A stretch of DNA of 64,000 nucleotides from Thalia democratica (lineage: Eukaryota). Positions 196-7,314 of this stretch are shown here, one piece after another. Where the stretch lies: contig OZ241832.1 of assembly GCA_965202585.1 (NCBI GenBank), positions 54,374,001 to 54,438,000 of the forward strand, in the 5' to 3' direction. The first letter of the stretch is position 1. The number at the start of each line of letters is the position of its first letter. Below the pieces are notes generated by a model that worked only from the letters and a program-made list of their open reading frames with translations, was not told the DNA's origin and made no database searches. The translations under genes and the position numbers were made by a program.

Positions 196-756
196 TTATT
201 TTTTGCAGCTCTTCTTCTTGGATGCTTTTTTGGCTGCCGGCTTCTTCTTGGTTACTTTCTTCTTCTTGCTTGCAGCTTTTTTAGATGCTGCCTTCTTAGG
301 AGCGCACTTTTTAGCAGGTCGCTTTTTGGCTGCTGGTTTTTTTGCAGCCTTCTTGGGAGCACACTTCTTTTTTGGTTTTTTAACTGCGGCCTTCTTTGCT
401 GCTGGCTTTTTAGCTACTTTTTTTGTCCTCTTCTTGGGCCCAGCAGCTGGCATTGGAGCAAGCTTGAACGAGCCAGAAGCGCCTTTTCCAGTTGTCTGGA
501 GAAAAGCACCTTTGGTCACGCCGCTGGTAAGTGCTCTCTTCAAGTGAGAATTGGAAGCTGTGAGGTCCAGCTTGTAGGTGTCCGCGATATACTTTTGTAT
601 CTTCTGGCGGGATGTACCTTTTCGTTCCTTCATTGCTCCAAGGGCAGAGCTAATCATTTCCCTGTAAGTAGGGTGCTCTGCCTTCTTGGCGCTTGGTCTC
701 TTGGAAGACCTGGCTGCGGCTGGCGCTGGTACTGCTGCTACTGCTGTGGTAGACAT
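196..756 (-). CDS. H1: Linker histone H1 (U1)
   Basis: 186 aa. Winged-helix globular domain (HPTYREMI...GKGASGSFKL), K/A/P-rich C-terminal tail, stem-loop at 163-178. Confidence 0.97.
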   Translation of the reverse strand: MSTTAVAAVPAPAAARSSKRPSAKKAEHPTYREMISSALGAMKERKGTSRQKIQKYIADTYKLDLTASNSHLKRALTSGVTKGAFLQTTGKGASGSFKLAPMPAAGPKKRTKKVAKKPAAKKAAVKKPKKKCAPKKAAKKPAAKKRPAKKCAPKKAASKKAASKKKKVTKKKPAAKKASKKKSCKK

Positions 757-3700
757 GTTGAATGAAAATTAAAGCGACCAAAACCTTACTTGCAAGAGTT
801 ACTGACTGTGACGAATTGACTGTTGAGCAGTTATGTTTTGCAAGGTACCTTTTACTTCTTAATACAAGCATTATCACGTTTGTTTAAGACACATATGCTT
901 ATAAAAATTTAGTTGTCTTATTACGAATGTTGAAAAAGTTCCAGTAAGAAAGAAACCATATCTAACTTGTTCTGAAAGTAACTTTTTTTAAAACATTAGT
1001 TTGAAAAGTCAAGAAATAACAGCCTGTATCTTACAGCACACCTCTAAATATATTAAGAAAAACATAAATGAAAAAAAAACATGTTAGCACACTTCCGACT
1101 GAATTTTCCTTTGCCGCTCGCCTAAAGTAATAAAATTTTAACAAAGCACAAGGTTTTTTTACCTCAAACTTAAACAAAGCTTCATTATTTCGATTTCATG
1201 GAGTTTTGTAAATCGTAAGTTCTATCAAGTGTGTTCAAGTTAATTACATTTTAAACTAATGTGTTAAAAGTAATTCCAAAAAATAAAAGTGTTCATTTTG
1301 TTTAGCTTTACTAGTTATGATTACTCAAAATATACTCATAAGCAATATACTCAAAACTTTTATTAAAATTTTTTTTTTATTAAACTGTTTTTTTTATGTT
1401 GCACATACTAGTAACTTACCTTACAACAATGTTTTCCAAACAACCTTTCAAAAACGTACAGTAACTATGATCATACTTGTTTGAAAATTATAAACTACTT
1501 TTAAACAAAATTTTTCGGTGTATATGAAAAACTAGTTTAACAAGTAAGTAGTTCAACATTAAATTAGCATTTCAAACAACTGATTCAAGCTGTTATACAG
1601 TTTAAAAAATACCGATGCAATTTTGCTCGTTACACTTAAACCTTGATCAAACTAAGAACTTATTCTTTGCAGATTTCAACCGAACAAAGTGTGCTGATAA
1701 AAGTGAACAAATGGATTTGGTTGTAAATTTTTCAAACAAAATAAAGTCAATTAGATTCAAAGAAATAAATAAGTCGAAAAAGCTTATGAAAACTAGCACT
1801 GAATATGAACTTAAACAAAAGTTGATATTTTTTGGACGAAAAATTTTACGTAAAAAAAGAGGTTGGTTTATTTTTTAAGCAGTATTAAGATACAAAGGGT
1901 AGTAAACAAAATAAAAACGAGTAAAGAAATCGAAAAGAAAAGCTTTTGAAATAAGGTTGACAAACGTTAGTGTTTGAATACAGCTTTGTTTACAATCAGA
2001 ACTCATAAGCTTTCAAATTATCTTTAAAAAATAATGCAATTAAGCTTTTTTTTTCAAACTTTGTTTTGTCACTTCTCATAAATCTAAAGTCAGTCGAAAC
2101 AACATAGAACAACTTATTACTTTCTTGACACATATTTTGAAACAACAACAGTACTGTTTATTAAAGTTTACGATTGAAGTGTTTACCAAGTTAAACATGT
2201 GTTTAATTCAGTTTAAGTTGCTTTACTGCTAAAACTAGTTTCTTAGTTTACTCAACCTAGATTAATCATAAAGTTCTGTACAATTGCTTTCATTGACTCG
2301 TTACTAGTTATCACTAACTTTTTATTAATGTAGTTCAGAACACAACTTAGGATAAGCTACATTTTATTCTCGGATGTCGTTCAGAACATAGCTGTTGTAG
2401 CAACAACATACAGATTTGAAAGAAAATCTCATTATCTTACTCAATTATAAATTATATAAAACAAGGTCTTTGCTTGACTCAAAGCTTTATGTTTGCCTAT
2501 TACGAAACTTGTACTATCATATAATAAGCTGTGAAAAAATGAAGGCTAAAAAAGTTTTATTTTTGCTTTGTCCAAATTTTTTTTCTTCTTTAGATTTACA
2601 AAAACTGCATAGCTTAAAGCAACAAGTTACAGTAATTTTAATTTTCTTATGTATAGCGTACAAAAGAGTTACAAATAAGTGGTAGCAAGTTTTTTACTTC
2701 TTTTCTTTGTATCATGTTTCACCTAATCATTTGGTTTATTTCGTATGCATGACAAGATAGGCAGCCTTAAACCAACCAAGTAGATGTAAGCTTAGTAAAA
2801 TTAAATATTTAATTGTACAAGTTCATCATTTTATTAAAGTATTTTGTTGTGTTAAATTGTGTACCTGGTAATAGTGTTCTCTTTCTTTTGAACAATCGAT
2901 CATGTTTACATTTATGTGTTATATCAGATTTGAATTGTTAAGAATGTTTCAGTTGTAATTGAACAGTTTTTTTTTAAGGACATTAAAAATTGTTTGTTGT
3001 TAACAGCTTAAAACGTTTTCAGTTGTTAAGTCAAAGTTTTATTTCTATTTCTGTTTAAGCGTATTATTTTCATTGAAAAATATAACTAGTTTTTACAATG
3101 ACGTAGGCACAGCTTTTTTTAATAAACTAAAAAAAATGAAATATTGAATTAAAAAAATGTCCACAAAGTAAGCATGAATAAGAATAAGTTTTATTTTGAA
3201 AAGAAAATTAAACGGAAAAAGCCTACGAAAAGGACACTCAAGTTAGTTAAAGCTTTTCACTAAGCATTCAGTAATAGTAAGCAATAAAGTAAGGATTAGG
3301 GCATCTAGCTAGAGTTCCCTTCTTAACAGCTGCACAAAAAAAGTAAAGTAGAGAAATTGTAGCAAGCTAGGTATTTAATAAATAATAGATTTATAGTTTG
3401 GAACGAAATGGTTTATGATTCTTTACCACCACAAAGTTGATTAAGTATGTACATTTGTGTTGTTGAGTCTAGTAGTCAATAGTAGCTTGTGTAATTAATT
3501 GGTGATCCACCTAACCTTTAAATTTAAAAAGTACATAGCTTAAAACAAACAAGTATAGTCGTTTTGAGTTGTCTCAAACATAGTTTAAAAAAGAGTTACA
3601 AAAAATGGTAAAAAAGTGTTCTTTTTTTTACCTTTGAATCATGTCGTTATTTGGCATAGCCACAGAAAAAAAAGTTCAACAAAACAAGTATGAGCTTTGT

Positions 3701-5206
3701 AAACAGAAAGATTATTTCAATAGTACGTTTGTTTTAAACAATCACTGTTGTTTACATTAGTTTAATTGTTCAACTTTTAAACACCTTTGTACTGTTTCAT
3801 TTGCATTCTGATAAATAAGACTAATACACTTTTGACAATCAAACCTCCGTTAAATTAATACCATTGAGTATTTTTAAATATCAATGTAAAGTTTTCTTCT
3901 CATTTATTATAATGTCTTACTTAAGCATAATTTTTTATTTAGTATCGTTGTTTTTTTATTAAACTAACCACAAATATCTATTGAGTGTTTGATAAACAAG
4001 TCTAAAAAGTTAATTGAACCAGAGTGAGTTTTGTTTAAACAACACGTTAAACAAGAAGATGCCCATTGAAAAAACTTTTTTACCTAACATTTAAATAGTA
4101 GTGAAGCAGAAAAACATGTTCTACGGTTTAAGCTCATTATCAAGAATAGTTTAAAATGAAAAGTAAAACTACAAAAACTGAAGTAAGTGTAACTAACTGG
4201 TAAAAATAAAAACAGAGAAATTCTGTTTTGAAAATTTATTTACAAGTTATTGAAGTACACTAACTTTTTTACCAACACGCACAATGTAGATATAAATTTG
4301 TACATTTTTTTGTCGCTTAGCTAGAGCTTGTTTGACATTCTTTACTCGACATTAGTAGCTGGTCAAATCAATTGGTGGTCCTGATTACTTTAGATTTGTA
4401 GAAACATGACTTTAAGCAAACTATTAGAGTTGTTTTAGGTCATCAATTTGTCTCATTTCTAATTAAAACAAGTAACTTTTACTTTGAAAACTAGCATAAT
4501 AAGTACAAGCAGTTAATCTTTTGTGTTTTACCAATAATGAGCTGGTTTGTTTTATGTGTTTATGTTTTGAATTGAAAATGTTTCTTAAACAAGGTAAACA
4601 GAAGTTAACTTTGAAAGAAGGAATATTTAATTTGAAAAAGACATTTATTATTTTTTGTTTTGAACAATCACTTTTAATTCATTTATGCATTCTTATGTTT
4701 TCAAAATGTGTTACATGGCCTCAATTGCAATTAAATTGATAAGAAGGAAAAACGTTTAAAAAGTTAAAGCTCGGTTGTTTTAATAATAATCAACAACAAC
4801 TTAAAATGAATACTAAGTTTTTGCTTGTTATAAGTGATATAAATTTCTGTTTAAAAAGTTTTGTAACTTATTGAATGCTTTTACAGAACTTCAACAAACG
4901 AATAAAAAAAATGTTACGTACAAAAAGTATTCAGATGAAAAATCTTACGGACAACATAATCAAGTTAGTTAAGCCTCATTTAATTACAAGTACTACTACT
5001 GTTTTGTGAATAAGACTAATGCAATGCTTTTTCTACAATATAACGAGTTACAAATTTATTAAGTGTTTGAAACAAAAAATAGTTTGTTCATTCAAGTGTA
5101 TGAGTTTTTAATTTACACGAATAAGAACTTATTTGTACTAAGCTTACATTCTTAACTGTAGCTTGTACTTTAAGTAAATACCAAAAGCTGGTTCTATTCT
5201 AATGGT
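757..5206. other. AT-rich intergenic spacer (~4.45 kb) containing the H1 upstream region; present in every unit
   Basis: Very AT-rich with many A/T homopolymers. No credible ORF or RNA gene. Confidence 0.9.
2580..4700. repeat. Degenerate internal direct repeats in the spacer, period ~0.85-0.95 kb (at least 3 copies)
   Basis: Collinear matches: AAAAGAGTTACAAA at 2662 and 3589 (offset 927); CTTTG[T/A]ATCATGT at 2705 and 3632 (927); 24/29 match of 3480-3508 to 4353-4381 (873); 18/19 match of 3728-3746 to 4654-4672 (926). Confidence 0.75.
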
Positions 5207-5222
5207 GGTCCTGAAAAGGACC
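5207..5222 (-). terminator. Histone 3' stem-loop of H2B (GGTCCT-TTTC-AGGACC, then ACCA); repeated in each unit
   Basis: Canonical 16-nt hairpin 13 nt after the H2B stop codon. Confidence 0.95.
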
Positions 5223-5235
5223 GGTTGTTGAGCGT

Positions 5236-5595
5236 TTATTTTGAGCTGGTGTACTTGGTAACAGCTTTAGTACCTTCTGAAACTGCGTGCTTTGACAACT
5301 CGCCGGGGAGCAAAAGCCTGACAGCAGTTTGGATTTCGCGGCTGCTAACAGTAGACCTCTTGTTGTAATGAGCCAAACGTGAAGCCTCTGCTGCAATGCG
5401 CTCGAAGATGTCGTTGACAAAAGAGTTCATGATTCCCATCGCCTTGCTGGAGATTCCGGTGTCGGGGTGCACTTGCTTCAAAACTTTGTACACGTAGATG
5501 CCAAAGCTTTCTTTGTTCCTCCTCCTTCGCTTCTTCTTGCCGTCGACCGGAGCGGTCTTGGCTACTGACTTCTTCGCGCTTTTGGTTGCTGTCAT
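5236..5595 (-). CDS. H2B: Histone H2B (U1)
   Basis: 119 aa. Histone fold [14 protein letters not shown]...[16 protein letters not shown]-terminus TKYTSSK. Confidence 0.98.
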
Positions 5596-5655: not shown

Positions 5656-5729
5656 CAGAGTTCCGTACGCGAACGATAGCTTGTTTCTCTCACTTCACAA
5701 TTCTCTCGTTTGTTGTAAATACTTTTGGT

Positions 5730-5759: not shown

Positions 5760-6140
5760 TTAGGCTGACTTTTTTGAAGCGGTCTTCTTAGGCAACAGTA
5801 CTGCCTGGATGTTTGGAAGAACACCACCTTGAGCAATTGTGACGCCGCCGAGAAGTTTGTTCAACTCTTCGTCGTTGCGAATAGCTAGTTGCAAATGGCG
5901 AGGAATGATCCTGCTTTTCTTGTTGTCACGAGCAGCGTTACCGGCAAGCTCGAGCACTTCTGCGCTCAAGTACTCGAGAACGGCAGCCAGATAAACTGGA
6001 GCACCAGCTCCGACTCTTTGGCTGTAGTTGCCGGTGCGCAACAGGCGGTGCACGCGACCGACTGGAAACTGCAGTCCTGCACGGGAAGACCTGCTCTTCG
6101 GCTTAGATTTGAGTTTTGATCCTTTACCACGTCCTGACAT
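5760..6140 (-). CDS. H2A: Histone H2A (U1), 126 aa, start corrected to MSGRGK
   Basis: [14 protein letters not shown]...QAVLLPKK. The ORF-track ATG at 6194 lies upstream of the TATA-like box. Confidence 0.97.
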
Positions 6141-6229: not shown

Positions 6230-6289
6230 TGTCATAGCTAATGCTAATCTTGTCAAAAATGTTGTAAAAACTTTTATATTGAATTAGGT

Positions 6290-6322: not shown

Positions 6323-6677
<355 letters not shown>

Positions 6678-6822: not shown

Positions 6823-7314
<492 letters not shown>

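Follow-up and report, generated by a model that had tools for sequence, protein, structure and literature searches.

Three head-to-tail units of putative H2B 3′ flank origin in the spacer of a tandem histone gene repeat of Thalia democratica

Subrepeats are found within intergenic spacers of ribosomal DNA (rDNA) in Xenopus. Subrepeats of rDNA spacers are short (60-330 bp) and occur in many similar copies; their number varies, and they function in part as enhancers or spacer promoters. The rDNA intergenic spacer of Drosophila contains subrepeats too, in the form of promoter duplications (PMC1215480). Histone genes are arranged as tandem quintet repeats in invertebrates, among them sea urchin, Drosophila, Chaetopterus, Mytilus and Hydractinia (PMC13525598, PMC12153100). 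A review from 2026 that covers how histone genes are organised in over 250 species (PMC13525598) does not treat repeats within the spacers, and our literature search turned up no account of spacer subrepeats derived from a histone 3′ flank. Here we analyse a stretch of 64,000 nucleotides from contig OZ241832.1 of Thalia democratica (hereafter the window), in which a histone unit with a period of ~7,220 bp recurs about nine times in tandem, and describe three diverged units, termed B, C and D, that stand head to tail in the spacer of this repeat.

Situated downstream of H2B and upstream of H1, the spacer (757-5181) measures 4.4 kb and is 73% A+T. As in the rDNA intergenic spacer, the head-to-tail repeats sit within a far larger tandem gene repeat, nested in its spacer; they are duplicated gene-flanking DNA with a partial gene signal, carried along by concerted evolution of the big repeat. 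Unlike the rDNA subrepeats, the units are three in number, 0.8-0.9 kb long and ~50-56% identical, stem from a 3′ processing signal rather than a promoter, and give no sign of function.

A first-pass annotation of the window, made from the letters of the sequence, had described a decayed tandem array with a ~0.9-kb period at 1220-4700. Every string that it quoted is present where it was reported, and its central proposal of a ~0.9-kb unit multiplied head to tail is borne out, both by an excess of matches at offsets 801-950 relative to shuffled sequence and by nhmmer alignments of B with C and of C with D. The range has to be moved: the array spans 2588-5206, and nothing significant was found in 757-2587. 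The units, their joints and the processing signal to which the joints are compared are as follows.

2588-3515, unstranded: unit B, 928 bp, the last demonstrable unit (nhmmer, three-way alignment and Smith-Waterman).
3516-4387, unstranded: unit C, 872 bp, matched to B by nhmmer over 857 of its 872 positions (E 3e-9), with a Smith-Waterman B/C score of 304.
4388-5206, unstranded: unit D, ~820 bp, the present 3′ flank of H2B, with an nhmmer match of 4264-4786 to 3418-3861 (E 2e-8) and a Smith-Waterman C/D score of 147.
3497-3515, minus strand: B/C joint, a more decayed half stem-loop (GGTGATCCAC), recognised by sequence comparison with the H2B stem-loop and found also in the chromosome-10 arrays.
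4370-4387, minus strand: C/D joint, comprising the loop end and the entire 3′ arm of the H2B stem-loop, followed by bases that resemble the true downstream sequence.
5182-5227, minus strand: the live 3′ stem-loop of H2B, from which the joints were copied (Rfam RF00032, 33.1 bits, E 1e-6).

The reality of the units was established by counting diagonals, in which 40-nt windows with at least 26 matches were tallied at all offsets of 757-5206 and set against 100 dinucleotide-preserving shuffles. Offsets 801-950 contained 129 such 40-nt windows where ~4 were expected, corresponding to z values of 8 to 17 per 50-bp bin. The k-mer autocorrelation agrees with this count on the period, and the one-period segments are confined to 2590-4693. 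Off-diagonals above shuffle level had been predicted at ~0.9, 1.8 and 2.7 kb; the first of these is strong, whereas the excess at the longer distances is weaker and falls at offsets 1701-1850 and 2451-2600. Single-sequence nhmmer aligned B and C nearly end to end (2588-3515 with 3516-4387, E 1e-7 to 3e-9) and C with D over 3418-3861 and 4264-4786 (E 2e-8 to 3e-7). Smith-Waterman local scores, each compared with 100 shuffles, were 304 for B/C (86 ± 10 in shuffles), 147 for C/D (90 ± 11) and 109 for B/D (86 ± 9), the last being reached by one shuffle in 100; by this measure B and C are closer to each other than either is to D. Pairwise identity in the three-way alignment is 49-56%, which matches the heavy divergence with indels described at first reading. 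The same set of three units is carried by all nine 7.2-kb copies in the window, and the structure recurs in arrays on other contigs, so the earlier view that it is fixed across the large repeat holds as well. Positions 2588-5206 comprise three head-to-tail units, all of them contained in the spacer of a larger tandem repeat. A loose-scoring blastn self-comparison was set aside, as it returned kilobase alignments of ~53-55% identity on many diagonals; the scoring scheme runs on in AT-rich DNA.

The joints between the units point to their origin. On its plus-strand end, unit D terminates in the live H2B stem-loop, and the C/D joint contains at 4374 an exact 10-mer, GGTGGTCCTG, that equals the 3′ arm at the H2B and H2A stem-loops and occurs nowhere else in the spacer. 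Both joints keep the orientation of the H2B signal, on the H2B strand. Along the minus strand the order is H2B with its 3′ stem-loop, then D, C and B, then unrelated spacer of ~1.8 kb, and finally the H1 promoter and H1. The repeated segment extends from the loop of the H2B stem-loop to ~0.9 kb downstream, and the far end of B (2588) shows no stem-loop remnant. Like the histone messenger RNA 3′ stem-loop (RF00032), the joints comprise the 3′ arm and the bases that follow it; unlike that family, which is defined by a six-base-pair stem, a four-base loop and conserved flanks, they lack the 5′ arm. Because only the 3′ arm of the stem is left, no hairpin can form, and an Rfam scan to E 1 returned no RF00032 match at 3497-3515 or 4370-4387. 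The joints are also devoid of the GTATTTAC-like element common to the DNA downstream of H2B, H2A and H4. Judging from these sequence features, the unit is the H2B 3′ flank, that is, gene-flanking DNA with part of a gene signal, and not a foreign element.

Comparison with other histone arrays of the genome bears on the age of the units. Some sister arrays are 95-96% identical to the window's spacer and others ~86%; those of chromosome 10 are ~94% identical over the aligned columns of the whole unit, with a spacer identity of ~86% by BLAST. The long form on chromosome 10, with a period of ~7.27 kb, keeps both half stem-loop joints. The short form, with a period of ~6.68 kb, is tandem in several blocks, lacks the DNA corresponding to window 4051-4684 and keeps the B/C joint; its 634-bp deletion does not equal one period and takes out the C/D joint together with the D copy of the motif discussed below. 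Against the chromosome-10 arrays, too, the B block matches the C unit at 73-78% identity. The presence of the joints and of this cross-unit similarity in diverged arrays indicates that the duplications are older than the split of the arrays. A genome search with unit C, in which 40 of 179 candidates were scored, gave matches among these only to histone arrays of 7.2-kb period, on contigs C7, C8, C10, C342, C1021 and C1248.

The chromosome-10 region (25.63-26.02 Mb; loci L013-L016 and L019) holds histone arrays in both orientations and in the two forms; one of its loci, L019, is a rearranged copy with spacer pieces out of order, and more arrays lie on C7 and C342. Relative to the chromosome-10 array, the spacer beside the H1 start (757-1850) is about half as diverged (~6-7%) as 1851-5200 (~12%), and on this sequence comparison it may be upstream control DNA of H1. 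Two DNA runs contain the stretch. Among their contigs, one joint omits 873 bp, passing from 3196 to 4070 with 13 extra letters in between, and another returns 915 bp, from 3611 to 2696; the matched sides are short in both. These joints hint at loss and gain of one unit between B and C in some array copies, as if units still misalign occasionally. Ongoing exchange between units with a variable unit number is not the picture we obtained overall, given the low identity of the units, the likeness of all nine copies and the weakness of the contig-joint hints.

Taken together, we regard the three units as very probably neutral, left behind by old tandem duplications of the ~0.9 kb of DNA past H2B. 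The units, their register with H2B, the half stem-loops and their occurrence in diverged arrays are observed; the neutrality and the order and mechanism of the duplication events we infer. In the first duplication, the two breakpoints would have been in the loop of the H2B stem-loop palindrome and ~0.9 kb downstream of it; with a breakpoint in the loop, the new joint would have carried only the 3′ arm of the stem. Such a position agrees with the fragility of hairpin-prone DNA, which may have favoured it. Unequal exchange between the two copies would then have added at least one more unit, copying the joint along. The same unequal exchange that keeps the 7.2-kb repeat homogeneous would have carried the form with extra units through the array and into what are now arrays on other chromosomes. 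Afterwards the three units would have decayed, each on its own, almost to saturation, since it is whole 7.2-kb repeats, rather than the units, that exchange with each other in register. The higher likeness of B and C would be consistent with a younger duplication or with less exchange at the small array's edge, and in tandem arrays less exchange is expected at an edge.

The remainder of the spacer, in which the first-pass annotation had placed further copies, was treated separately.

757-2587, unstranded: rest of the spacer upstream of H1, with no demonstrable homology to the units.
1985-1998, plus strand: motif-like 14-mer, 897 bp before the motif copy of B; a possible trace of a fourth unit, unproven, with no homology around it.

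Aligned with B, C and D together, 757-2587 reached a Smith-Waterman z of 0.9, a score attained by 15 of 100 shuffles, and its halves (757-1660 and 1661-2587) gave a z of -0.5 against each other. A hidden Markov model (HMM) of the three units found nothing over shuffle level in 757-2499, and an nhmmer match of 4152-4237 to 758-847 (E 0.03; z 2.7) is not significant once the tests made are counted. The repeat matches reported at 1310/2234, 1787/4485 and 1985 keep the phase of the period but are indistinguishable from chance; older copies may have left them as traces. From the units of two array types, a sequence-only Infernal model was built for their first 215 positions; it matched 2386-2573 with 13.2 bits (nominal E 2.5e-4), resembling a partial fourth copy beside B. 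This candidate was dropped, since in unrelated DNA of this genome, 50 kb in all, the same model reached 15.1, 14.8 and 10.8 bits by chance. The five unrelated control stretches (L020-L024) yielded Infernal matches with a nominal E of 5e-4, and L020, an arbitrary 10-kb stretch (C8 10.00-10.01 Mb), has a G+C content of only ~24-25%, a background that makes the calibrated E-values of DNA profile searches too optimistic. Of the three to five copies first proposed, three are upheld; a count of five gained no support from the HMM, from Smith-Waterman or from the Infernal control.

Searches for other content in the spacer gave little. Its open reading frames (ORFs) had no Pfam match, no transfer RNA (tRNA) was detected, and Rfam searches with E up to 1 returned a single chance-level small RNA match inside C (3565-3608, 21.4 bits, E 0.32). 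Satellite DNA was considered and rejected: there are three diverged copies per histone unit and no long homogenised arrays, and the scored matches lie only inside histone arrays. A transposon relic was likewise rejected on the boundary in the H2B stem-loop, the lack of a Pfam match and the lack of dispersed copies among the scored matches. The only RNA libraries containing the stretch are two marine metatranscriptomes, kept as contigs. Spacer depth equals H1 depth in one and is ~thirty times lower than H2B depth in the other, no higher than DNA carry-over from a high-copy array could give, and cannot be told from such carry-over.

The best-kept motif of the units has the consensus TTTGTTTTRAACAATCA, spans 17 nt and is present in each of them.

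2882-2898, plus strand: B copy of the motif, with two mismatches to the consensus.
3728-3744, plus strand: C copy of the motif.
4654-4670, plus strand: D copy of the motif.

This motif belongs to a set of observations that weigh against purely neutral decay. Along the units, similarity is unevenly spread: B and C share a 130-bp block at their starts that is 73-78% identical, and the remainder is near background. By a rough estimate (~1 in 100) uniform decay makes the survival of the motif in all three units unlikely. Uneven similarity and the kept motif could reflect past constraint or a local conversion patch. The array-to-array comparison that speaks for neutrality is also low in power, with arrays differing by only ~10%, and, on RNA-library depth, the spacer may be transcribed.

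A rival reading is that the units are kept for a repeated working site. Candidates are a factor-binding site (the near-palindromic TTGTT..AACAA motif, which has AACAAT as its core), an enhancer or boundary serving H1 or H2B, a replication origin, or a seed for a histone locus body. A function of this kind was among the first suggestions for the array, and the motif is indeed present once per unit (2882, 3728, 4654), with a similar 14-mer in phase at 1985 and the well-kept block at the starts of B and C. We nonetheless consider it unlikely. The motif is altered in the B and D copies of L013 and in the C copy of L014, the exact match at 1985 is gone from L015 and L016, and the short form, a natural array variant without 634 bp including the C/D joint, has lost its D copy altogether. 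Identity between the window array and L013 (long form) is flat across the unit zone at ~0.85-0.95 per 50 bp, and no conservation islands were seen. This sequence comparison has low power, and the changes in sister arrays lend no support to constraint; none of the tests applied (Rfam, Pfam, array identity, motif in sister arrays) gave evidence of a repeated functional element. The more specific idea that TTGTT(1-3 nt)AACAA, once per unit and perhaps also in phase at 1985, where all other homology has gone, is a putative working site, with the units kept as a phased set organising the histone locus, seems to us decidedly unlikely; the candidate roles of such a site might be binding of an HMG-box or forkhead-type factor or action as an origin element.

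We consider it very improbable that the half stem-loop joints, together with the DNA that flanks them, serve RNA polymerase reading through from H2B towards H1 as back-up sites for termination or for the 3′ end. The joints do derive from a real processing signal, on the same strand and downstream of H2B, and low-level RNA-library contigs map to the spacer. Yet a 3′ arm by itself cannot make the hairpin, the joints fail to match the histone stem-loop family up to E 1, the GTATTTAC-like element is not kept after them, and the RNA depth of the spacer is within what DNA carry-over could give. The other early suggestion, that the units are relics of a transposon or satellite inserted in the spacer, would account for repeated AT-rich DNA of unknown origin, but we hold it to be extremely improbable. 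The register of the units with H2B and their start inside its stem-loop rule out such an insertion, D being the gene's own flank; no transposon protein domain was found, and the scored matches (40 of 179 candidates, the weak point of this argument) include no copies outside histone arrays. Chance similarity in AT-rich DNA does explain everything claimed to the left of 2588, the 13.2-bit match at 2386-2573 included. For B, C and D its probability is negligible: no shuffle came near the observed values in the diagonal count or in Smith-Waterman, which already refutes chance for 2588-5206, and one unit joint falls exactly on a GC-rich 10-mer that equals the stem-loop arm.

The genes that frame the spacer were located by ORF translation, with coordinates given for one copy of the repeat.

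196-756, minus strand: H1 coding sequence, the gene that borders the spacer opposite H2B (ORF translation).
5236-5595, minus strand: H2B coding sequence (ORF translation).
5760-6140, minus strand: H2A (ORF).
6323-6634, minus strand: H4 (ORF).
6823-7233, minus strand: H3 (ORF).

All five genes lie on the minus strand and each is followed by a histone 3′ stem-loop (RF00032), five per unit. With H1, H2A, H2B, H3 and H4 plus their stem-loops in a tandem unit, the locus is a replication-dependent histone quintet repeat, and it resembles the invertebrate quintets in its single-exon genes with 3′ stem-loops, its several-kb unit repeated many times and its AT-rich spacers. The last period in the window is 7,208 bp, not 7,220. 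The histone unit of Hydractinia is 5,998 bp long and includes 5S, U1, U2 and tRNA genes (PMC5011920); unlike that unit, the one described here has none of these genes according to Rfam and tRNA scans.

Two further features of the repeat deserve mention. A T-rich short tandem at 1358-1397 recurs every 7.22 kb and has two versions, whose own periods are 17 nt and 18 nt; window copies 1 and 5 share one of them and the remaining copies the other, which means that variants are interleaved along the array. On the minus strand 3′ of the stem-loops (5165-5200, 5690-5725 and 6250-6285), H2A and H4 share GT(A/T)TTTACAAC, and H2B has GTATTTAC. These elements sit at varying distance past the stem-loop, ~6-26 nt, and may be the candidate U7-binding element of the species.

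By analogy with rDNA, the three units are best classed as a real but ordinary relic, a further example of spacer subrepeats of the rDNA type. Their description removes a false lead, in that no hidden gene, RNA or mobile element is detectable in the spacer by the methods used. The finding carries little weight alone, yet it shows neatly, on a small scale, how two levels of repeat have evolved in different ways: within the array the 7.2-kb unit is kept homogeneous, and between arrays it is ~86-100% alike, whereas the 0.9-kb units nested in it have drifted to near saturation. This contrast indicates that exchange proceeds in register between whole units.

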